DNA of 64,000 nt from Amoeboaphelidium protococcarum X5 (GCA_023515725.1 JALDTO010000200.1:300275-364274); one strand, 5' to 3'. Counted from the stretch's first letter, positions 50,679 through 64,000 are shown. Made by a program: numbers and translations. The notes: generated from the sequence alone by a model not told the origin.

Positions 50679-52007
50679 ATGTTGAGGATAAGCAAGGCGT
50701 CAAATTTGTTACATATGAGACTCGCTAGTTCGTATATCAAGTATAGTAGTTAGGCGACTGTTATTTAGCGGGATGATATTAAGCCGGCGAAAGGTGGCAG
50801 TAGTAGTGAACGATATTATGGACGACGTCAGGTTCGAAAAGTTACCATAAAAGACTAAGTTAATGCGTACATCGCTTTAACAAAGCCACGGTTATCAACA
50901 CTCGTTCTACTTACATCTGTATATGGCACCGCTCTGTCACCTTACACTTGCGCTATTGATCCATATCTCATGCTGCATACCATGGTGGGAATGTCGCTGT
51001 GTATTGGATCAGCGAATGCTTTTAATCAGATCCTGGAAGTTCCGTATGATTAAATGATGCCGCGTACAAAGAAGAGACCTTTATGTACCAATTTGAATTC
51101 TGGCGGTGGAATCAAATCAGTTCTTGAGCCGGTCATTAGTAGAAAGTAGGCGCTGACGTTTGCTATCGGCACTGGCCTAGTGGGATCTTTTACTCTATTC
51201 TCGCTGCCAGTGTTGAATGCCGCTTGGACGTGTGGACTTTTAGGTACGTGTAATATCGCGTTGTATTCCATAATGTATACTTTAGCCAAGAGGCGGACAG
51301 CTCTGAATACTCATATCGGTGCTGTAGTTGGGGCTATCCCACCGCTTATAGGCTATGCTGCAACCATTCCGAGTGATGCCATGTCTACCACCTCCGTATT
51401 AGGTCTGTGTGGAATTGACTCGCTTGGTCTCAGTTTAGCTTTTATTCTCTATTGTTGGCAATTCCCACACTTTAATGCTCTATCATTCAGGATTAGGGAC
51501 TAGTATCATAAGGCTGGTTACGTGATGAATTCCATTTATAGAGAACGGTATTCAGCTTTTGAATCGCTACTTGGTTCCATAGGTATTGCTGTCGGATCGC
51601 TGTGGACATATCAGGCTGGACTTTCGTGCCTTGGAAGTATTGAATAACATCATTAGTTGCTGAGTTCATATTTCCCTGTGCTTAGTCTCGCCGTCAATGC
51701 TCCTATGATATATTACAGTTATCGATTCCTCCGTTCATTTGATGGAGAGCCATGGTTCAAAACTGATCCAAAGTCATGTACATCTGTAATCCGGACATAA
51801 TAAGGCACCGTCATATAACGCGTTTAATAATCCGCTGATCATGATACTCGAGAGCGTCAAAAGTAACATACACGTAAAGAATCTGCACGACTCTGCTTTA
51901 AGGCTTCACTCTATCATTTGCCCGCGCTGATTCTGCTTATGCTTTTGTGCAAATCTGAATGGCGGAATTAGTAAAAGTAAGACGATAGTATCACAGAGCA
52001 ATCTTGA
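50679..52007 (+). CDS. COX10: Protoheme IX farnesyltransferase
   Basis: LTKPRLS, ANAFNQILEVPYD.MMPRT..RPL, GAVVGAIPPLIG, WQFPHFNALS; basic presequence-like N-terminus. Confidence 0.95.
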
Positions 52008-52338
52008 TTGAAAAGGTCGCAATTAATAGATAGATTTCTGATACTTGTTAAAATGTTATATTTGTCTTCAATTTGACACTTTTCATACTTACTATATACA
52101 GGTTGTTTAGTATATCACTTTTAAACTTTGAACATTGATGCCGAGTTGGTCAAACGTCTCTTTTTCTACAGATAGCATAGTGAGAACGCGTATAAACGAA
52201 TAGAATAGTTAGGACTTATTACAAAAAAGCCGTAACGGGTCATGACCGTGTGACGCGGGCGATGTGTGACACGAGTACTAATAACACGCTCGGAAAAATT
52301 TGTCAACTTTTCTTTCGCTTCCTGACCATCAACACAAT

Positions 52339-54360
52339 ATGCTATCATCACCCACTCAATAGAGACATCGAGAAAACGATCTGTATCTGCAGTAAAGGGC
52401 TCAGGAGACTTATGAGCTGGCAGCGGAGAATAGGCCGGAGAATACTAATTTGGCATACAACCCAAAGCAGATTGAATTTCAAGATTGGTGTACTGAGCGT
52501 TAATTCAGAGACAGAGATACAGTGTCCGGGGAGAAATTGCATGCATTTGTGAGCGATATGGTGGTTGGCAGACCGAGTAGAACTGATCCCACTGTCACTG
52601 TTGGTGCTCCTACAGTCAATTCATATGTGGCAGCTATCACAGATTTGTATAAGTAGTAGAAGCTTCGCAACATGAACAACTACCCTCCGCCTCGAGAATT
52701 TCCGGCAGTGAAGCAGTTACTTCATCAAGTGAGAGGAGCGCAAGATTAGGTAAATAGGCGCAATTATGCTGATAGAATAGCAGGTACCATAGCTGATGGC
52801 TATTCGAGTGTCGAAGAGCTGCAGAGAATTGCAGATTGGTTCATGAACTCAGGAGGTCGGAACGGGCTGCGTGACAGATTTATGTTCCTCATGGCGCACT
52901 ATTGCTTATTACGTGGCGAGTCTTTAAGATCTTTGGAGTTGGCTGATTTATATGCCATCAAATTGGAAAATGAAGGATTCACTGAGTGTTGGGCATTACT
53001 GGTACTCATGTGTTAAGGCAAAACCAATCAGTTCAATCGTAAAGAGTTTGGCTCATGCCTCAGAAATAAGCGCGTTGAAATATGCCCTTTCGGAGCATTG
53101 GCTCTTTATTTATTTCAGCGTTGGCATGACTTTAATGAGCCGTTTCCTGATTTGACTAGTCCTCAAGATTGGTTTTAGATCAAAGTTTGTCGAGCTCGTG
53201 GACTTACTGAAGAGATGACTTACCAGACTCATTATAATGCTGTCAACAAGTGCTTGAGGGCCTGTAACATTCAAAGCAGTGCCAAGACTCATATCGGACG
53301 TGGTGCAGGTGCACGTATGGCAGAGTTGCAGGGTGCGTCTGAAGGTGATATTCGGCGCTTGGGGAGATGGAACAGCCAGGCGATGGAAGGCTGCTATTTG
53401 ACTGCACTGCCCAGAGGAGCGATGAGATCTTTGGCTGGTTTCCCTACTGATTCCGGATCATTCTATTTAGATCGAGGATAAATTGATCCGCCTGAACATT
53501 TACAGAGATTGATATTTCCAGAAATTGATACGTATGTTATTGCAGAACTAGCGCATACGACAACCGCCGGGTTTATTAAGCTGCTTAAGTACATGAGGAT
53601 TGTTGTTTTGTAGGACGCGGCTATTATGTAAGATTAGTATCCAGATTAGACTCTCTTTAATCATGCTCTATTTAGAAGTCAGGATTTTTTGCATTATAAA
53701 GAGTAACTGCTTGCTGCTCGGATTAATAATCTACCGCCTACCGAATTGAGATTGTAATAGGCTATGCCAGAGTTGGTAAATAAGATCGATTCTGTTGGTC
53801 ATTCTCTTCACGGCAAGATCGATGTTTTGAATCATAAAGTTGAACAATATGCTCATTCAAATACTCAAGTGCGCAATACTCTGAATGATTTACTCAATGG
53901 ACGCACTGCAGTCCGGTTATATGCTGAGCCATAAGCTGCTAATCATGTGCTGCATTAGCCGCCTATTTAAATTGATTTGAATGCGCCTAACGTCTTACAG
54001 AATCAAGTTGGTGATAACATTGATATTATACCTGCTCGAGCTCTTCCACCGCAGTAGTATACCATGTCTCGTGGGCTGTCAACTGTTCAGGATGTGTGGA
54101 GGGAGTATAAAGAAGGCATTGGTGGTAATCCATCAGTTGAATCATTGGAGTAATAATTTGGGGCCAAGTGGAGAAGCAAAGACAGTGAAAGGAAGCATTT
54201 TTCTAGGCGTTTAGTTATATACAAATTTATTCAGAGTAAGATTGATAGTGGACTTTCGGAAAATGACGTTCTCACTGCTTTGGAGCGAAAGCGCCTTGGT
54301 GATAAGCTGTCACTGGACAATCTATAGAAGAAAATTAAGTCCAGGGAAATTGATATATGA
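52339..54360 (+). mobile_element. Crypton (CryptonF-type) tyrosine recombinase transposon ORF, intact, 673 aa
   Basis: No internal TGA (checked). RPENT..AY, LLRGES (R), GKTN (K), THIGR (H..R), LGRWN (W), GCYL (Y); C-terminal GCR1_C-like TVQDVWREY..G...LE..FG.KWR. Confidence 0.9.
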
Positions 54361-54590
54361 CTTGCTTGCGTCGACTTTTATATATATATATTTATCATGT
54401 AACCTTGAATTTAGACTTCTTTGTAATACATTTTTATAAAATTCAAAAATTCTTTACATATCTGCATACTGAGCAATATCAATGTCATGTTTGGTATAGT
54501 CCAAGAAAATTCGGCTTTGAAATACAACATGCACTGTTTCAGCCAATTCTCAGTCACAGCAATGAAGAATAAACGGTACCGGAAAATTTT

Positions 54591-54679
54591 AGAATAACTA
54601 AAATAACTCTAGTTATTCTGTGACAATTCTTGTGACAAGTTTAATGGTTTGTTTGTGACCTCGCGCGAAATCTTGTGAC
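54591..54679. repeat. 10-bp inverted repeat plus four TGTGAC motifs (candidate Crypton right end)
   Basis: AGAATAACTA 54591-54600 / TAGTTATTCT 54610-54619; TGTGAC at 54619, 54631, 54654 and 54674. Confidence 0.55.
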
Positions 54680-55975
54680 CCAAATTGGGATAATTTACCA
54701 TATTTGACTTGCAACGTCCATCAATAACAACGTTGGGTAGAGTTCTTTTAGTAGATGCATGTTAATCAGTGTATCCTGTGAATGCAGTCAAATCCTGTTC
54801 AGACACTCGGTGTTCCCATTGCACAGGTACATTCGACTCGTTTCGCGTTAGAGATTGACGACTTTAATTTTGAGGATTCTGAAACAACAATTATTGAGAT
54901 CGATCACAGGATGAAACTATGGATGGTGGACTATATTGCAGTGATGATTATAGTGAGCAGTCTGTTTGAGTTGAAGTATCACGTGTTTAAGGTATTGTTT
55001 TTGAGTGCTTTTACTCCATGGCACTTAAGAGCTCACTGACCAGTTTCTAGCCAATATTCTTGAATCCTTTCTTTGCTTGATCGATCGAGTTTTGACCGTG
55101 TTATGTATGACTTTGAACCAGCTCTGACAAGGAGTTTTCTTGAGAGGATAACTTAGCCATTACTCCTCTTTATATTTCTGATAGAATTTGCTTTATTACT
55201 GCAATGTCAATAGCCATACGTGCGTCCATATTGAATCAAGGGTAGATGTAACTATAATTAATACTCACGCCTAGAAACGGTCAAGAGAAAGTGTTGTTAG
55301 GGGATAAAGTCTGATTTGAAACAACAAAGGTGAAGAAATTTCCAGTCGTTTCACATTGTCACAAGCTACCGGAAACAGTGCGAGACTGAACTATACTTAA
55401 AGTATGACTTCTGCTCTCCTAAATTTACGGAACTTTTACCCACCTTAAATTTAGGCTATTTCATGGCTCAACTATTTTGAGAAGAAGCAAACTACAACAA
55501 GCCGCGTGTTGAGTTTCGATCATGACGCGAACGATCTTAAATACGGTCCATGAGTTATTAAATTAAAGACGTGTGATATTTTAAGATAGCGCGTATCTTT
55601 TACCTTTAAAATCAGTAATGAAGAAACAGAAAGGAGCACTTGACTCCCCTTGCCATCTCAAACGCTTTATTAAGGAGGTATTTCCATAGCATCTTTCGGG
55701 GGCAAACATTTTCACTCATTCAAGTCATTAGTTACAATGTAGGTAGGTAGTTATTTATGTACGCCCTTGATCTGTATTACCCCTATATATTACTATGAGT
55801 GCAAAGCCACATGTGTGTTGTGAGTGCAGAGTTGTGCATGTTCTTGTCAGTTTGCTAACCCTCAGTGAACGCGACGATGACTCATTATGTCTTTCAAACT
55901 ACTGGTGCCTTCGATGACGCAAATGTTACTAAGTCTAACCCTGTAGCCATTCCACGCGGAAGCGTGGTCAAATTG

Positions 55976-56043
55976 GTTCAGAAAACCTGATAAAAAATCA
56001 AGCGTCAAAGTTCAGAAAACCTGACCAAAAATCACGCGTTAGA
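55976..56043. repeat. 34-bp tandem duplication
   Basis: GTTCAGAAAACCTGATAAAAAATCAAGCGTCAAA / GTTCAGAAAACCTGACCAAAAATCACGCGTTAGA, 29/34 identical. Confidence 0.85.
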
Positions 56044-56164
56044 GTAATGCGAATCACTTCTAATAAGGTATTGTGGCTGACGCGCGTGATGGTGTGGCGT
56101 TGTGCGAGCTGTTCACCTAAGGTTGGATCATTCTGTAAATGAGCAAATATTGCAATTACAGTAG

Positions 56165-57979
56165 TCAAAGATGTATTTCGAACAACTCTTCAGCAATATT
56201 GATTATGATCCAAATGAAATTCGGAATGAATAGTGTGTCGTGTAATAGATTGTCTAGTAGACTCTAATCCTGCCTTCTAGTAACCAAAGTATCCTAGATT
56301 TGTATGTCTCTCCATATGGAATTGTGCGGCAAGAATTGAATTGCTTTTCTGCCATTCTCTTTGCAACTCCCATGTATACCATCAAAGTCATGCAGTTTAC
56401 TTCCATGAACCTCGATTGGAACTAAACACCCACATGTCTCTTCATAATGCAAATTGTCTATAGCACGCTACTTTTCTCTGCACATATCTACTGTATGATC
56501 CTGTCCCAGACAGAAAAAGCACCTGCCGTGTAGATTAGTGCACATATGCTAGTTGTTACACAATCCTGCCTACTGGCCTTCTAGAACTCTTCTGTAGCAT
56601 ATCAAGCACATTCCTTCTGTCCAGCTGCAAAACTATTTCCACTTTCCAAATGTTATATGAATATGCCTAATCTTGTCTCTGGCGTGTTGAGTGGAGGCGT
56701 CCTCGTCACCAAACTATTCTATTCTAAGGCGCTCTCTCCAGTTGATATGTGGTTAATCTGGTCTTACCTGTCGTCCTGGCAATGCACAGTTATCACAATT
56801 TGCTATGCCTTATCTGTTACACGTCATCAGATCTTCTCCATCAATCTCTCTGTGCATCAACTCTCTTCTGCAAGTTGCCAAGTCTCTGCAGTACAAAGTC
56901 ATAAGAGGATCCTTCACATGCCTTGCCTTGCCTACATCCAAAAGTATTGCCTCGCACGGATGTCCATCTCTTCCAGCTCTGCCAGTCTCTTGAACATAAT
57001 CAATCAAGGTGTATGAGGGCCCGTAATGATACACTGCTCTGATATTGGCAATGTCCACCCCAAGTCCAAATGAACTACTGCATATCATCACATTGGTGTT
57101 GCCATTCATGAAGTTGCTCATCTATGTGTCTTTGTCCTCGAGCGCGTGGTAGTATTAACCGGCAGGAACAAGTACAGATCTTTGCAGGTTGGTGACATCA
57201 GCAATTCTATAACAGAACACCGCCATCTTACCGTGTCCCTCTAATTGCCTCGCCTTTTATTGGATCAAAGCCAGAGCTTGTGCTTCTGATACTCTCACTC
57301 TGGAATATCTTGTCGCTGGCTTGACATTTAGTAGTCTGACAGCTGCCGCCTTTAATTACCAATCTCTGACTATATCACGTATGTATGCATTTGGCAATGT
57401 TGCCGATAGCATGATCAATGGCGCGTCATAGAGTCTTGCCAAGCTAAGATTAAGCATTTGAGGTCTGAACGCTTGCCATAATATGTACACGTGGATTTCG
57501 TCTATTACTATGCATCCTAGCTAGTCTGTCCCTACCAGGTAAGTCATCAGCGAATGGTACGTGCCATACTCCAAGTGCTCCACCGCCACAAAGATCAGTG
57601 ATGGATGTATACTTGCAATATCCTGTAAAAGAGTAGCATAATTGGTGACTGCTGTAAATCCTAATTATCTAGCCTTGTCTGATGCATCCTTCTCCAATGC
57701 AATTGTTGGCGTCACTACCAGTACCGATTTACTAGGCATCAATTTCTATAATGCCAAGTAGATGAATGACTTGCCACTCCCTGTAGGGCAGACTGTGAAT
57801 GTATTTTAATTGCTCATTGCTCGCAGTATGGTTTATACTTGGAAATCTTTGGGCGTGGCCTCGGCACCGAATAAGCTTCTGCAGATTTGATTGATTTGCT
57901 CTATCATTGTGCCGTGTTGGATCAAGGAATATTGCGTTTTTTGCGTCCAGTATTTTGCACTTTATGAAATAGATCTCAT
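56165..57979 (-). CDS. RecQ-like SF2 helicase with C-terminal Cys/His clusters and Zn knuckle, ~604 aa
   Basis: PTGSGKS, VVTPTIAL, IDEIH, LSATLP, FGLGVD, YVQETGRAGRDG, CRR..CDNC and CFFCLGQDHTVDMC; frame open to TGA; start tentative. Confidence 0.85.
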
Positions 57980-58151
57980 GTCTATATATATCACTCGCGA
58001 GATGTTTTAAAGTTAGTACCCGCGGTAAATACGGCCTGATCTGTAGTGGTTGAATGATGTTTGCCTTCAATGTAGCGTGAGCAGTGCTAATAAAGAGATG
58101 GATATTAAAGATGATGTATGATCTTGAATGATCTTGTATTAAAATAGATTA

Positions 58152-59234
58152 TCAATTGATCTAAAGTAGTGCATGCCAACTCTTGCTAACCTTGAAAAAC
58201 TCCTCTAGTGCAAATTCTGTGATTCTTGGTGTAGCTTCTGCAGAACGACCATATACCTGTTGCCCAATATCTGCGCCATGCCCTGCCTACTCTTCCTATA
58301 CTTACAGTTACACCTGTATATTGGATGCATTATGGCAATTCCTTCTCATCAGAGCGATGATTGCGTGCCTATACTACGATATACCGACCGGATAACCAAA
58401 TCCGACACTGCAATTGTTCTTGAAAGTCTCTCTAAGCTGCTCTGCTGACAATCCAGCTAGAAGGAACGATAGATACTTTTACTCCTACTCAAAGACTAGA
58501 TACGCTATAGGCTGGATGAAAGTCACAAACTACAATACCAACCTTGAGGTGGTCTTATCTAAAAATCTGACAATGAAACTGTCTCTCTAAGTGATGGAGC
58601 TTGTCTTGTTATAAGTCTATGTCAGCATTATATGGTCTTTCATCCAGTATACTTGTCTTCCTTTCGAGGTTGTATCCGCCACTTGGATTTGCGCAAGTTC
58701 TTCAACTCTGCTTGGCATTCCACAAGCCAATTGAATCAGAGTCGCGAGAGTAGACACACATAACTTGAATCTCCTTTGCCAAATGATCTTGGTTCTTTCC
58801 ACAACCATCTGCTCTCTTACATCCCAAAAGTCTGCCAGTCTATTTCCCATCATCTCTTGTACCAATTCCCGCTGCAATCGAAGTAAATGATCACTTTAAT
58901 CAACAATACTGCGCTTACAGCTAGTCTTGTCCTTCACTCTGCCAGTCTATATTGCGCCTAGATGATATCCATATGTAAGCTGTCCAATTAGACGCGTCAG
59001 GTTGGTTTGCATTTCTTGAATAGTAGACTTTATTACGGCAGTAGAGATAACACTATTGTCAATGCTTAGAGATTTACCCGTGTTATCTGTCCACGTAATC
59101 ATTGAAGTGACATTTCTGTCATAACTGTTGTACCGTTAAGCCAAATGCAACATATTCATAATGTTGGTGAAAGACGAGTTCTCGCGCCCATCCCAAATTT
59201 ACAGTAGATCATTAAATTCCTAATCATCAAGCAT
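58152..59234 (-). CDS. Tyrosine-recombinase-like protein, probably 5'-damaged, ~360 aa
   Basis: GMPSRVEEL (R), YNKT (K), YRHAIIA (R), QAGH (H), VYGR (Y), then SKSWHALL and TGA. Confidence 0.65.
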
Positions 59235-60205
59235 TGCAGATGGGTATATTAGCTAATTACGATGATCATGGTACTAATTATTGTAAAGTAAAGCAAAAAT
59301 TTTTCACTTTTGCGTAGTATACACCTGATCATTCCGTTTAAATCACGAATACTATTAACAATGTACTGCGAACAATACCCTTAATTTACAATAAACAGTG
59401 AATACGGTTTAGGATCACCACCAGGATAGCTATCCTATATCGTGTAATATAAACTTCCATGGCAAGGGGCATCGGCGTAATGAACAAGAACCTTAGTACT
59501 AAACTTGTCCCAGCTAAGTTTATCCAGACCAACGTTCAGTCCACCGAATACGTCTTCTGGACCATCAGCACCGCCTTGAGCCTTAATAGTGGAAACAAAC
59601 CTTCTAAACTCGTCGTCATAACAAGTGAAATCCGGCACTGATATATTATTGCTTCCCATGTCAAAATCAGTGTAACGAACAAACGCCATCCTGAAATTGG
59701 CTTTCGGATAGTGTTCAGTTATACGCGTCGAAAGCTCCAAAATGTTATCCTTGACTCCATCAATCCAGGGCTACATTGATCCTGTGCAGTCTAACAAGAC
59801 GGCGAAATCGACGTTCTCTGATTCCTTAATATTCTGCAATGAGGGATTGATTTATCCCTTGCGAGCTGCTATTTTCAGTCTTCGAGATGACTTGTACTCC
59901 TAATCGTGCATCTTGACATCTCTTGTAAAAGTATCTGAAGTTCTACTACCAGAGGAACAACCTTTTGACGAGGATGTCGAAGAAGAAGCGACGCCAGCTT
60001 GATATTTTGCCTTTATGCTAGAGCCTTCCGTTGCAACTGTGCCAGACTTGACTTAAATGCGGGAGGTAGAGGAGCTCAGCTTAGTAGCACTATCCATATC
60101 TTCATATTCACCCGGGCGAACGTCTTGGCCATGGTGTTCGCCAGATGGAAGTTTGTATTCATTACCGAGGGAAAACTCTTTCTACTCATAGCGCATACAA
60201 TGCAT
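59156..60205 (-). pseudogene. Truncated vWA-domain gene (VwkA/alpha-kinase-associated type) running into the recombinase region
   Basis: VDFAVLLDCTGSM, FVRYTD, GGADGPEDVFGGL, ADAPCHG and YPGGDP; similarity is lost after ~59410. Confidence 0.65.
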
Positions 60206-60639
60206 TAAAAGATTACAAGATCTAGAAGAGGATTGGGCAAAGTATTTAACAAAAACCGTACATGATGCCATCAATCAGCCTTCAGTGACTAGTTAGCCAA
60301 CTAGATCCTACGCATGAAATTCCAAATCAATGAGCACTGCCATAATTCAAACCAGCATGCCCACAGAATTCAACCCATTTATCTTTACAGCTACTGGAGC
60401 TTCAAGATTTTTGGATCTATCACAAACTGAACCGCTTTCAAATGATATCAAGCACCCAGCGATAGGGGTACCCTCCAGCACCATCATATCGCAAAGCCAA
60501 ATATCAGACAACTATCATCCATATCATAGCCAGTACCATCAGAATTGCATTAATTTTATTAAAAATTCATTCACCATACCTTCATATCAAAGTGCGCGTT
60601 CCTTAAAGCTCATTATTCTAACCACAGACGCGATCATCA

Positions 60640-61670
60640 TTGCGGGTTGTCGATCTATCGTCTGCTTGTCTGTCCGTCCGCATCATCAACCGACGTGCCA
60701 TCCCTCTTTGTGGACGTGATAATGTGTTAAAGCAAGCTGCAAATTGCATGAAAACCATGTCATTGCCACCTGGAGAAGTTGACAAGGCATTGCGTAAAAT
60801 TCCTGTATGCTCTGGGTTGTCTGGTCTTGGAAAGACAATAATGCTGGATTGATCCGCTCAAATTCGAATCGTTCCGTTTTGACCTTTCGCGAAAGAGTGG
60901 AGGCGTATATTCGATTTAGCTGATATCCCTGAAAGTCGGCTGGGCGTTTTGGTGCTTTATCACAACGGTCACATGCCGCACCCTGTTGAACGCAAAATGA
61001 GCATTGAGGCATCGTTCGCTTGAAGGTTGTTGCATCGAGGATAATGGTGATATGTTTGCCCACATGTTTACCGAGTCATTGTCGGTGGCTGGCGAGGGAT
61101 TAACCTTTCGTTTGGCTCTCGATGTTATTCGCCAGAAGTATATCAACTTGGAATGATTAACGCAGATGAGAGTCTATATTTGTTTCTTGGTGTGTTGACG
61201 AGTGTCAAACGATTCATAGAGTCGGTGGCAGGAAGAAGTGAAACGAAGAACAACTCTAGGATCTGCTAAACTTACTCGGTGACAGCATGGCCTCTTCTGT
61301 TGCTGGTGTACGCATTTATCCAATGTTTGCAGGGACTGACTTTTCCGTGATTTCTATTGCAAACTCCTCCAAGATGGAAAGCTTGCGTAGGCCGAGGTAT
61401 TTTCTGACTCAGCGAGACGTGGAAACTGCAATTGGTTCAATCGCGAATGGATATAGGTTGCTATTGCACGCCTCTGTTCGCCGACATTTGTTTTATCTTG
61501 GTGAAGTTCGGATGCAGATTACGGAATATAATTTGCGATTGCTGAAGGAGATGGAAAGCATTCCGCCTGACGACTTCCTGACTATGGAAAGTATGAGAAT
61601 GCCCTCTCATCAATCAAGAATTGTTATATGGAGACATGGGGAAGATCACTTGGTGCCATCAATTTTATAA
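60640..61670 (+). pseudogene. Crinkler-associated P-loop NTPase (CR-NTPase-like) pseudogene
   Basis: LCGRD, Walker A SGLSGLGKT, YHNG, frameshifted Walker B LFLGV-DE, MFAGT; multiple TGA and frameshifts. Confidence 0.6.
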
Positions 61671-64000
61671 AATTTACCATTGCGTGTTCAAAGAGTATAA
61701 AGGACAAGAGTTAAACAAGAGTTGGTAGTTCATGATGGCAAAAAGTGGATAAATATCTGAAACGCACTGTAGTCCCTCAAGCTACTTCACTAGGTCTTTC
61801 GTTGTAGAGTTCCCAGCGCCAAAGACCAAATACCCAGTGCATCGTAGACTCGATTTCCGAGGCTGTAAATAGATCGCTTCCCCAATCGTAGGTCAAAAGA
61901 AACAGCAGTCGTAAATAGATGTTTAAGTTAATCAACAAAAGACATATCAACTTCATAACCAGCAGAACAGTAAAATCGCAACTTTGCCACACTATTATTC
62001 ACCACAAGATGGTATACATTCCAATGAGGAGGGCCTCTGTTCAAGAGATGACGAAGAATCACGACATCGGTGACATTATTAGTGAGTTTGCGTTCAAAGT
62101 AACGCCGACGCTGCTCAGGTTGATCATTCGAATGTTCACACCAACTCTCCAAATTTTAACTGTCAAGGAGAACGACTCCAGAATGAGCTTCTAACTTGAG
62201 AGACTTGAAGGCATAAAATAAGACATCATCTTTCAATCGAGGCTCAATCCCATTGCAGAAGCCCTCTAAAGCCTAAGTTATGGGATGAGTATCAACAGGA
62301 AAATCAGCGCCTTACTCGTCAGATTACTTTACAGGTGAATCGCCGAATTAGATTGGATTATGAAGATTATCACCCGCCACTTACTTAACATCTAGAGCAG
62401 CGTCTTGCATTGCACAATTCTCGACATTGACCTGTTAAGTAGTATCAGCATTATTCTCAACAGCTTGTTCACATTCTTATTCAACTTTTACACCAGGACA
62501 TTCTTATTCAATCTATAATGGAGCATTATCATCCGGTGTATTGTCCAACATAGGTCATTATCATCTACTGCATTGGCTGATTGTGGACGATTGAATTGGT
62601 TGACGCGTAATCTTTATAACAGATCTACATGGCTCTGAGATGTTAATTCATTAATATACGGCAGCAGCTTTTTAAAATCACTACGGCACTTTTACAATCT
62701 CTAGTGCATCATTTGATACAGAACAAGCTTACTACTCCAAGCGCTCGGTGTAGAGATGGACTTCAATAAACTAAGGACTATGACAATTTGAGATTTGATT
62801 AATTAGATTGATTCATGTCTACACAGCAGCATCTCCTCTAAACACCTCTATCTAGCATGGACCAACTGGCGAAGTTAAGTAGCATCATCATTAATTTGAG
62901 CAATATAATTAAAATTAACGTGAGTTAATGATGGGGACGCAGGAAACTCTTCGAACTCAATACAGTCAAAACCATGGTCAATCTTTACCATTTGCAGCAG
63001 ATCATTAAACTATCGAGTCAATTGGGTGATATTTACGCGTCGAGATTTTAAGGCTCTGGCAAAGACCTTCTTCTTGAATTGGCTGGACGTGTTCTTCCCT
63101 TTGTAATCTAACAGCACTGTGATCTCAACCATTTCGCTCTTAAGCTGCCTCAGAATAATGTTACATCTCTTTCTTACAAGCGCGATTCTAGCATCTTTAT
63201 ACTCAACTTTCTGCACGGTCCATCGACTGGCAGCATCGATGCCGAGCTCCAGCTCGAAGCTCTCAACTTTCTTCAATAGAGATCGATCATTCGGCATATG
63301 TTACAGATCTTCCAAGCTCTTAACGTATAACTCTTCAGACGTCCACTTCTGCTAATAATCACCAGGCGCACTTTCCACCGGTGCCAAAAGTATTGCTGCA
63401 CACTACTCATCTACTGACATTTATTGAGCATTCAGAACAGGATGATCATACAAAATAATCCTCCAACCCAAGGAGCTCCTGTTCTGCGATCTCGTATCTC
63501 TGCACTATTTACAGAACGATCTTATCATTCAGATCCATGCTGTGTTTCCAGAGTATATGATCAATGACCTCTTCACGCGCTGCAATACAAAGATTCTTAG
63601 TAATGTAGCCAAAGTTCCCAATAACAGACCAGAGGCTCTCCATCAATTCACCAGCAGTTTTGCCGGACCAGAGAGAAACTTACTAGAAAATTTAGCTTGA
63701 CAATAACTTTAATGCGCGTAAAGATGCAAAGCAGGTACTAATACATCTATATCAATGAGATCAGTCTTGTCAATCCTACGCGCCAAGTTCACCACCCACT
63801 GGCATCCGACGTCATAATACACTTTAAGTTAATCAGGACAATCCTAAAATGATGCGAGCATTCGTAAAACATTCAACACCGCCACATCAGCATGCAAATA
63901 TTTCTCACCTTTCTCAAAGTTAGAATATGTGCGAGAGATTGCAGGCCCATGCCTAGCACAACATGCTCCGAACAATCCAGTAATATCATTAAACTTTGAC
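61670..64000 (-). mobile_element. KDZ (Kyakuja-Dileera-Zisupton) transposase remnant with C-terminal Ulp1-like peptidase; 5' part lies outside the window
   Basis: TGLFGACCARHG, GEKY, YYDVGCQW, PALHLYAH..YCQ and (after a frameshift ~63665) GELMESLWS; later RCLEE; near the end HWNVYHL..RFYCS and LQP..S..C. Several frameshifts. Confidence 0.75.

Follow-up and report, generated by a model that had tools for sequence, protein, structure and literature searches.

A RecQ-like helicase beside a putative tyrosine recombinase in the aphelid Amoeboaphelidium protococcarum: a candidate truncated gene pair of the telomere-linked helicase type

A 64,000-nucleotide stretch of the genome of Amoeboaphelidium protococcarum X5 (GCA_023515725.1 JALDTO010000200.1:300275-364274; this whole stretch is hereafter the window) carries two neighbouring genes on the minus strand, between positions 55950 and 59400. 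One of them, open reading frame (ORF) B, encodes a predicted RecQ-like helicase of superfamily 2 (SF2), while the product of the other, ORF A, shows candidate catalytic residues of a tyrosine recombinase (YR). The original prediction proposed this pair as an undescribed class of eukaryotic DNA element. The analysis reported here leans instead towards an interstitial, N-terminally truncated copy of a gene pair of the telomere-linked helicase (TLH) type. The main features of the pair, in positions of the window, are the following:

58152-59234, minus strand: ORF A, 360 amino acids (361 codons), with six TAA and ten TAG codons in frame and TGA as the terminal codon only (translation table 6)
58695-58721, minus strand: box I-like motif GMPSRVEEL of ORF A, with the candidate catalytic Arg codon at 58707-58709; GxPxRxxE is kept in paralogs
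58563-58613, minus strand: YNKT...FIVRF of ORF A, with the candidate catalytic Lys at 58605-58607, between predicted strands 2 and 3
58248-58376, minus strand: box II-like region of ORF A, with YRH (Arg at 58368-58370) and GH-x8-Y (His at 58278-58280, Tyr at 58251-58253)
57980-58151, minus strand: spacer of 172 nt from the ORF A stop to the first ATG of ORF B, across which the frame shifts
56165-57979, minus strand: ORF B, 604 amino acids from the first ATG (605 codons), with nine TAA and ten TAG codons and TGA as the terminal codon only (translation table 6)
57767-57790, minus strand: Walker A (CPTGSGKS) of ORF B
57491-57508, minus strand: DEIH of ORF B
56963-56992, minus strand: motif VI (QETGRAGRDG) of ORF B
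56783-56890, minus strand: RecQ-type Zn cysteines of ORF B
56480-56521, minus strand: CCHC knuckle, CX2CX4HX4C, of ORF B
56699-57887, minus strand: multi-copy helicase core, with a 94% copy on contig C235 and a ~89% copy in another strain

Recognition of these genes depends on the genetic code. Under table 11, the longest ORFs on the minus strand of 55950-59400 measure 86-112 amino acids and the helicase frame is broken about ten times, every interrupting stop being TAA or TAG. Reassignment of UAR to Gln has been documented for A. protococcarum (PMC5304391), and the translation used was that of table 6, in which TAA and TAG encode Gln and TGA is the sole stop. A reading of the region as a stop-riddled pseudogene, of the kind produced by repeat-induced point mutation, has been ruled out, as all the stops are TAA or TAG and are sense codons under the aphelid code. 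TGA appears at a frequency of 0.023 per codon over all six frames of the window, which makes TGA-free frames of this size improbable by chance (~2e-4 for ORF A and ~8e-7 for ORF B), so the lengths of both ORFs are non-random. The only other long ORFs within 55729-60800 are the exons of a half von Willebrand factor A (vWA) gene, described below. Eight GT..AG introns, listed by a script and predicted from sequence alone, could fuse ORF A with ORF B in frame. With tools that apply the standard code, only fragments are visible at this locus.

Stop-free pieces of ORF B are matched by the Pfam families DEAD and Helicase_C, and a SAT motif is also found. When a 135-amino-acid piece of the 94% copy on contig C235 was used as the PDB query, the best sequence matches were RECQ1, bacterial RecQ, RECQ4, BLM, RECQ5, and WRN, and the match to RECQ1 extends into the Zn-binding subdomain. 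Additional Cys/His clusters occur after the helicase domain. By these motifs and matches, ORF B is a RecQ-like SF2 helicase. An intact helicase-only paralog of 580 amino acids, 55% identical to ORF B, is located 120 kb away, which indicates that the helicase is able to stand alone; no recombinase is present beside it. This paralog and ORF B have the N-terminus MI[ED]QINQICR in common and, since MIEQINQ lies at 57907 in the window, that position is probably the true start of ORF B, giving 580 amino acids. The gene of this 580-amino-acid paralog (L035 1272-7205, contig C200:477271-483204) is directly upstream, on the same strand, of those for an 806-amino-acid KDZ transposase and a 456-amino-acid Ulp1-like ORF. 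KDZ-Ulp1 genes are also present upstream of the window's pair, so that the helicase-KDZ adjacency is seen twice, with a different order. Metagenome assemblies yielded relatives of the helicase (P0007-P0015 and three loci), all of them decayed and fragmentary, and no recombinase-like domain was found beside any of them.

ORF A forms part of a public protein, P0001 (hypothetical protein MIR68_006750 of Amoeboaphelidium protococcarum), as residues 310-675, and this segment was the reference for the ORF A searches. A second aphelid subfamily, at ~27% identity, is encoded on contigs C179, C142, C207, and C98, with additional fragments. The alignment of the paralogs keeps GxPxRxxE, YNKT, VRF, YR[HQ], and GH-x8-YG, with YNKT and VRF invariant, in a conserved core of ~230 amino acids of ORF A. 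R, K, R, H, and Y are thus conserved in that order, which is also the order of the catalytic residues in XerC/XerD, FimB/FimE, lambda Int, and Cre. The distance from His to Tyr is 9 in both aphelid subfamilies, the same as in XerD, Cre, and lambda Int, and the residue spacings of bacterial and phage recombinases are similar by eye to those of ORF A.

A profile comparison, fixed beforehand, of the aphelid family against a XerC/XerD/FimB/FimE profile (hhalign) gave box I as the best local alignment. In it, LIQLACGMPSRVEELAQIQVADT is paired with residues 138-167 of XerD, with the catalytic Arg (XerD R148 region) in register. The score of 21.3 (P 0.033) was reached by none of 240 column-shuffled controls (mean 13.5, maximum 19.9). 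In the ESM Atlas, the nearest clusters overall are 28 unnamed fungal clusters with a score of 0.93, and the nearest named ones are Phage_integrase (0.88), NDC10_II (0.87), and ResT/TelK (0.85), scores below 0.9 being rated by the tool as leads only; the ten best named clusters all belong to the YR clan. A strand-strand-K-strand pattern surrounds the candidate Lys in both AlphaFold2 models, which are of low confidence. The conserved residues, the box I alignment, and the ESM neighbours together make it likely, on this comparative evidence, that ORF A has a tyrosine-recombinase fold.

The TLH gene family has been described since 1998-2009, and its members are induced in fission yeast on telomerase failure. 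Three components are considered critical in TLH proteins, namely a pair of C2H2 motifs at the N-terminus, a TLH domain (~250 residues) immediately in front of the helicase, and RecQ motifs, and these proteins have been reported in S. pombe, Magnaporthe, Ustilago, Metarhizium, Fusarium, and the choanoflagellate Monosiga; according to a 2024 preprint, their function "is yet to be determined" (bioRxiv 10.1101/2024.02.27.582403). The genes are multi-copy, the majority being truncated or mutated (PMC1635262), and published work regards them as subtelomeric genes of the host (bioRxiv 10.1101/2024.02.27.582403; PMC1635262). The aphelid locus was compared with S. pombe tlh1/tlh2, Magnaporthe oryzae TLH1, Ustilago maydis UTASa, Metarhizium TAH1, the Fusarium oxysporum TLHs, and the Monosiga brevicollis TLH. 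As in these genes, a RecQ-like helicase is preceded by a domain without assigned function, whose place ORF A fits in position and size, and the family exists in multiple copies, many of them truncated or mutated; extra Cys/His motifs follow the aphelid helicase.

The missing component of this architecture is provided by a 973-amino-acid paralog on contig C179, which carries the C2H2 motifs CSIC-x9-H-x4-H and CFIC-x14-H-x4-H followed by the recombinase-like domain. Both motifs match the spacing published for the TLH fingers, Cx2-3Cx8-14Hx3-5H and Cx2-5Cx11-16Hx4-5H (bioRxiv 10.1101/2024.02.27.582403). Since ORF A aligns to this protein only from about residue 455 onward, the window copy lacks the N-terminal ~450 amino acids that bear the fingers and, contrary to TLH proteins, has no C2H2 motifs. 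A second difference is that the aphelid domains are two ORFs in different frames, whereas those of TLH belong to one polypeptide. All three TLH components are therefore encoded in the aphelid genome, although not in one ORF. Considering this architecture and the unnamed fungal Atlas clusters, ORF A may be homologous to the TLH domain. The TLH-type gene architecture is known; what is of interest is the idea, put forward as a hypothesis, of the TLH domain as a tyrosine recombinase, and no paper linking telomere-linked helicases with tyrosine recombinases was found in the literature searched.

Other known systems share single traits with the pair. Cryptons are, like the putative recombinase, DNA-level YRs of eukaryotes without a reverse transcriptase (RT), but they carry no helicase, they show RW..Y where ORF A has GH..Y, and all the Cryptons of this genome are matched by NDC10_II (PF16787), which does not match ORF A. 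Recombinases of bacteria and phages resemble ORF A in the order of the residues and in the register of box I, and differ from it in that ORF A has no Pfam-level similarity to them, holds ~13 extra residues between the second Arg and the His, and occurs in a eukaryotic, helicase-linked context. The AcademH and KolobokH transposons, found in fungi among other eukaryotes, also use an SF2 helicase (DEAD plus Helicase_C) as an accessory gene, a likeness of gene content and not of helicase relatedness; they encode a DDE transposase between inverted terminal repeats, while between 55729 and 60795 there is no DDE gene and the window holds one truncated terminal sequence and no paired termini. DIRS, Ngaro, and PAT elements differ in their RT, and RNase H; no RT match was seen in the pieces scanned, and the long ORFs of 55729-60800 are ORF A, ORF B, and the vWA exons only. 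Helitrons use an SF1 helicase of the Pif1 type fused to an HUH Rep, while that of the pair is an RecQ-like SF2 enzyme, and no Rep domain was seen in the scanned pieces. Neither was DUF3435, the domain of Starship captains, matched by P0001:310-675 in a Pfam scan at E <= 10.

The descriptive part of the original prediction agrees with these results: the R, K, R, H, and Y codons in order, a spacing of ~170 nt on the same strand (172 nt, both minus), an intact RecQ-like helicase with Zn-binding tails (open under table 6, with the RECQ1 Zn subdomain match and the CX2CX4HX4C knuckle), the difference from the neighbouring Crypton, and the absence of RT and HUH Rep. Its remark that similar fungal proteins carry annotations as RecQ or telomere-linked helicases is in line with the TLH literature.

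The proposal of a new mobile element fared differently. DNA and six-frame protein searches of the 23.6-Mb assembly located ORF A at this locus only, plus a 375-bp fragment on contig C233, and 57888-60795 is unique in the assembly apart from those 375 bp. Further copies of the C-terminal part of the helicase and of its tail lie on the small contigs C144 and C147, and the depth of the source-sample contigs corresponds to roughly one copy of ORF A and several of the helicase and tail. A second sample with the same species label contains the helicase core only (56841-57888, ~89%); at 80% likeness, ORF A, the vWA part, and the tail are all missing from its contigs. The helicase copies have one end in common and vary in length at the other, and the repeat boundary at 57887 falls inside ORF B. 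This boundary is explained by truncation of the other copies at their 5' ends, given that the N-terminus seen in the window recurs in the 55% paralog. Within 10 kb of the recombinase-like paralogs on C179, C142, and C207 no helicase is encoded. The dN/dS ratio (nonsynonymous to synonymous substitution rates) is 0.27 for the helicase against its C235 copy and 0.15 for ORF A against the C233 fragment, values that indicate divergence of the copies under purifying selection.

No inverted or direct repeats bracket the pair, no target duplication or empty site was found for it, and no second terminus could be located within the 64-kb window. A pair that was single-copy, syntenic, and without defined ends had been named in the original prediction as evidence against an element. 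Here the pair is found in a single copy and its ends are undefined, although it is not syntenic, as the other strain lacks it. By that rule the claim of a transposon fails in this genome; the pair is not supported as a mobile unit, and mobility is not demonstrable in this genome. As for the undescribed class, the architecture is that of the known TLH family, and each domain also occurs without the other.

According to these data, the reading that is somewhat favoured is that the locus represents an interstitial, N-terminally truncated TLH-type gene pair of A. protococcarum. A number of results weigh against it. The window spans 300-364 kb of a 733-kb contig and is not telomere-adjacent, contrary to TLH genes, and no TTAGGG-type telomere arrays appear in the window or in any copy examined (the small contigs C144 and C147 could be subtelomeric). 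The likeness of ORF A to the TLH domain is one of architecture and not of sequence alignment, and the genome has both domains together at one locus only. With respect to the recombinase fold, no Pfam family matches P0001:310-675 at E <= 10 beyond a weak Phage_rep_O match. A phmmer search of 1.84 billion representatives with a 92-amino-acid piece of ORF A returned only itself and a spurious repeat protein, and word-based searches of 5.8 billion proteins with ORF A returned aphelid paralogs alone. The C-terminal (box II) part alone is non-significant against the Xer/Fim profile, and hhalign gave no signal between the aphelid family and the genome's own Cryptons or its one canonical PF00589 gene. 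AlphaFold2, run on shallow paralog alignments, yielded unusable models, with a predicted local distance difference test (pLDDT) of 43.2 for the whole of ORF A and 40.4 for its catalytic half. Moreover, no PDB sequence match was found for ORF A, and no relatives of it in metagenome scans.

Some of these results are what would be expected if ORF A were a non-enzymatic TLH-type domain that binds DNA or protein, its R/K/R/H/Y being fortuitous, in a host family that owes its copies to segmental duplication and ectopic recombination rather than to any activity of its own. By sequence, neither a YR model nor a solved structure matches ORF A, box II is non-significant, pLDDT is near 40, the named ESM neighbours score below 0.9, and there are no ends, target duplications, or empty sites; the literature, too, regards TLH genes as host subtelomeric ones. 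Fortuity, however, fits poorly with five residues conserved in the right order at 27% identity, with a His-Tyr spacing of 9 that equals that of XerD, Cre, and lambda Int, with a box I in register above all 240 shuffles, and with ten best named protein language model neighbours all from one clan, and a non-enzymatic ORF A is accordingly judged quite unlikely. At the opposite extreme, the pair might be a still-active autonomous transposon class with its own tyrosine recombinase and with a helicase that serves its replication or unwinding. Such an element might leave two intact ORFs, purifying selection between the copies, a difference in presence between two strain samples, and helicase copies with one common and one variable end, all of which are seen here; yet the pair exists in one copy, with no second terminus in 64 kb and no terminal repeats around it, ORF A lacks the N-terminal ~450 amino acids of the longer paralog, and the sequence at the end of the tail is found as well in small foldback elements that are not related to the helicase. 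An active transposon is thus very improbable.

It could also be argued that the helicase and the recombinase-like fragment are chance neighbours, derived from separate repeat families that were juxtaposed in a transposon-rich island and functionally unlinked. Their copy histories do differ: the helicase core and tail are multi-copy, 57888-60795 is unique save for 375 bp on C233, the repeat boundary at 57887 cuts ORF B, a helicase-only paralog stands beside a KDZ-Ulp1 gene on the same contig, no helicase lies near the recombinase-like members on C179, C142, and C207, and the island includes a Crypton and a KDZ element. Nevertheless, the two genes are 172 nt apart on the same strand and in the published TLH order (the domain, then RecQ), the boundary is attributable to the 5' truncation of other copies, and the finger-bearing C179 paralog completes the TLH architecture, so that mere juxtaposition is regarded as unlikely. 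The TLH-type gene pair therefore stays the preferred reading. The window copy is best explained as a leftover, either a relic or a remnant that has been domesticated, and autonomy as a transposon is not demonstrable for it. Standing alone and truncated within an island of transposons, it is of modest interest in itself, mainly for annotation.

Upstream of the pair, the public gene model adds exons to ORF A:

60353-60487 and 59390-60181, minus strand: exons 1-2 of MIR68_006750, a unique N-terminal part with the first half of a vWA domain (VWA_4 profile positions 3-91 of 169)
59253-59389, minus strand: intron of the public model, GT..AG, joining the half vWA domain to ORF A (P0001 mapped onto the window)
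58155-59252, minus strand: exon 3 of MIR68_006750, which includes ORF A

For the vWA half-gene (59390-60487), the assembly contains neither a paralog nor a homeolog, and the contigs of the other strain lack it; its other half was not found. The vWA exons are probably flanking or captured DNA outside the family.

Downstream, the helicase is followed by a tail related to a family of foldback elements that resemble miniature inverted-repeat transposable elements (MITEs):

55729-56164, minus strand: non-coding tail past the helicase stop, common to contigs C144 and C135 (two places)
55976-56043: tandem repeat of 2 x 34 bp within the tail
55732-55751: partial foldback-MITE-like terminal sequence at the end of the tail, the outer ~45 bp of other copies missing
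Foldback family members: 55729-55830 of the window; L031 1457-2271 (C150); L018 116-252 (C179); L038 1-109 (C147); L036 3136-3252 (C135)

The foldback family has palindrome-rich termini, CTTACAATGTAGGTACCTACCTA ... TTACAATGTAGGTAGGTAGG, and is present at at least 10 loci, in a ~820-bp form and in ~130-bp forms that consist of both ends only. Several small contigs start exactly at the foldback terminus, and no transposase has been identified for the family. The terminal sequence of the tail forms foldback elements of 130 bp and ~820 bp elsewhere and has no second copy in the window. Its candidacy as an inverted repeat of the helicase-recombinase element was rejected, as it is unpaired in the window and forms foldback elements unrelated to the helicase; it represents either the helicase unit's own end or an old adjacent insertion. 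On contig C135 (L036 3327-5387), the promoter region of a gene for a host amidase contains a 406-bp copy of the tail with a foldback terminus. The open frame of this amidase, with its GGSSSGEG signature, extends into the tail copy under the aphelid code; the long ORF beside the tail copy was considered as a transposase and rejected, being this host gene.

The island around the pair also contains a KDZ element and a young Crypton, the latter 4 kb from the pair. A homeologous locus (L029, C249:809364-812446), ~79% identical, matches 51760-52201 and 54681-55734 contiguously and constitutes a natural empty site for the window Crypton (52202-54680). For the pair, no empty site emerged: the C249 homeolog matches up to 55734, and its continuation was not found elsewhere on that contig. 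A repeat at 60796-61750, with at least eight copies (C135, C285, C8, C66, C211, C205, C235, and C192), starts exactly at a break of the source-sample contigs (60796) and encodes a 306-amino-acid ORF of unknown kind; it probably corresponds to the 3' end region of the KDZ element. The sole locus of the genome that reaches the Pfam cut-off for Phage_integrase is L040 613-2373 (contig C249:841573-843333), a 587-amino-acid open frame with a canonical HxxR ... GH ... Y end, whose recombinase type is unlike those of the Cryptons and ORF A.

In the TLH-type gene pair proposed here, ORF A, if active, would cut and rejoin DNA through a 3'-phosphotyrosine link, as Cre or XerD do, and the RecQ-like helicase would unwind or branch-migrate the joint molecule, or open structured DNA at chromosome ends. 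Complete members of the family would combine both activities in one protein guided by its C2H2 fingers. The family would have been duplicated in the genome under purifying selection, leaving as survivors one pair, several helicase-only copies, and several copies with fingers plus the recombinase-like domain. From the window copy, the finger part would have been lost and replaced upstream by the unique half vWA gene.

More generally, it can be proposed, tentatively and with the balance of probability still against it, that the TLH domain of fungi, choanoflagellates, and aphelids is a divergent tyrosine recombinase, and that TLH genes are, or descend from, self-propagating elements that combine a recombinase with a RecQ helicase. 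The TLH domain has been a conserved domain without a function for 25 years, in genes that lie at the chromosome ends of many fungi and a choanoflagellate. If the proposal is true, it would explain why TLH genes are multi-copy, truncated, and prone to hop among chromosome ends, and would give them a mechanism, site-specific cutting and rejoining with the helicase processing the joint molecule. Whether the subtelomeric helicase genes are domesticated mobile elements would then become a question that can be addressed in S. pombe and Magnaporthe.

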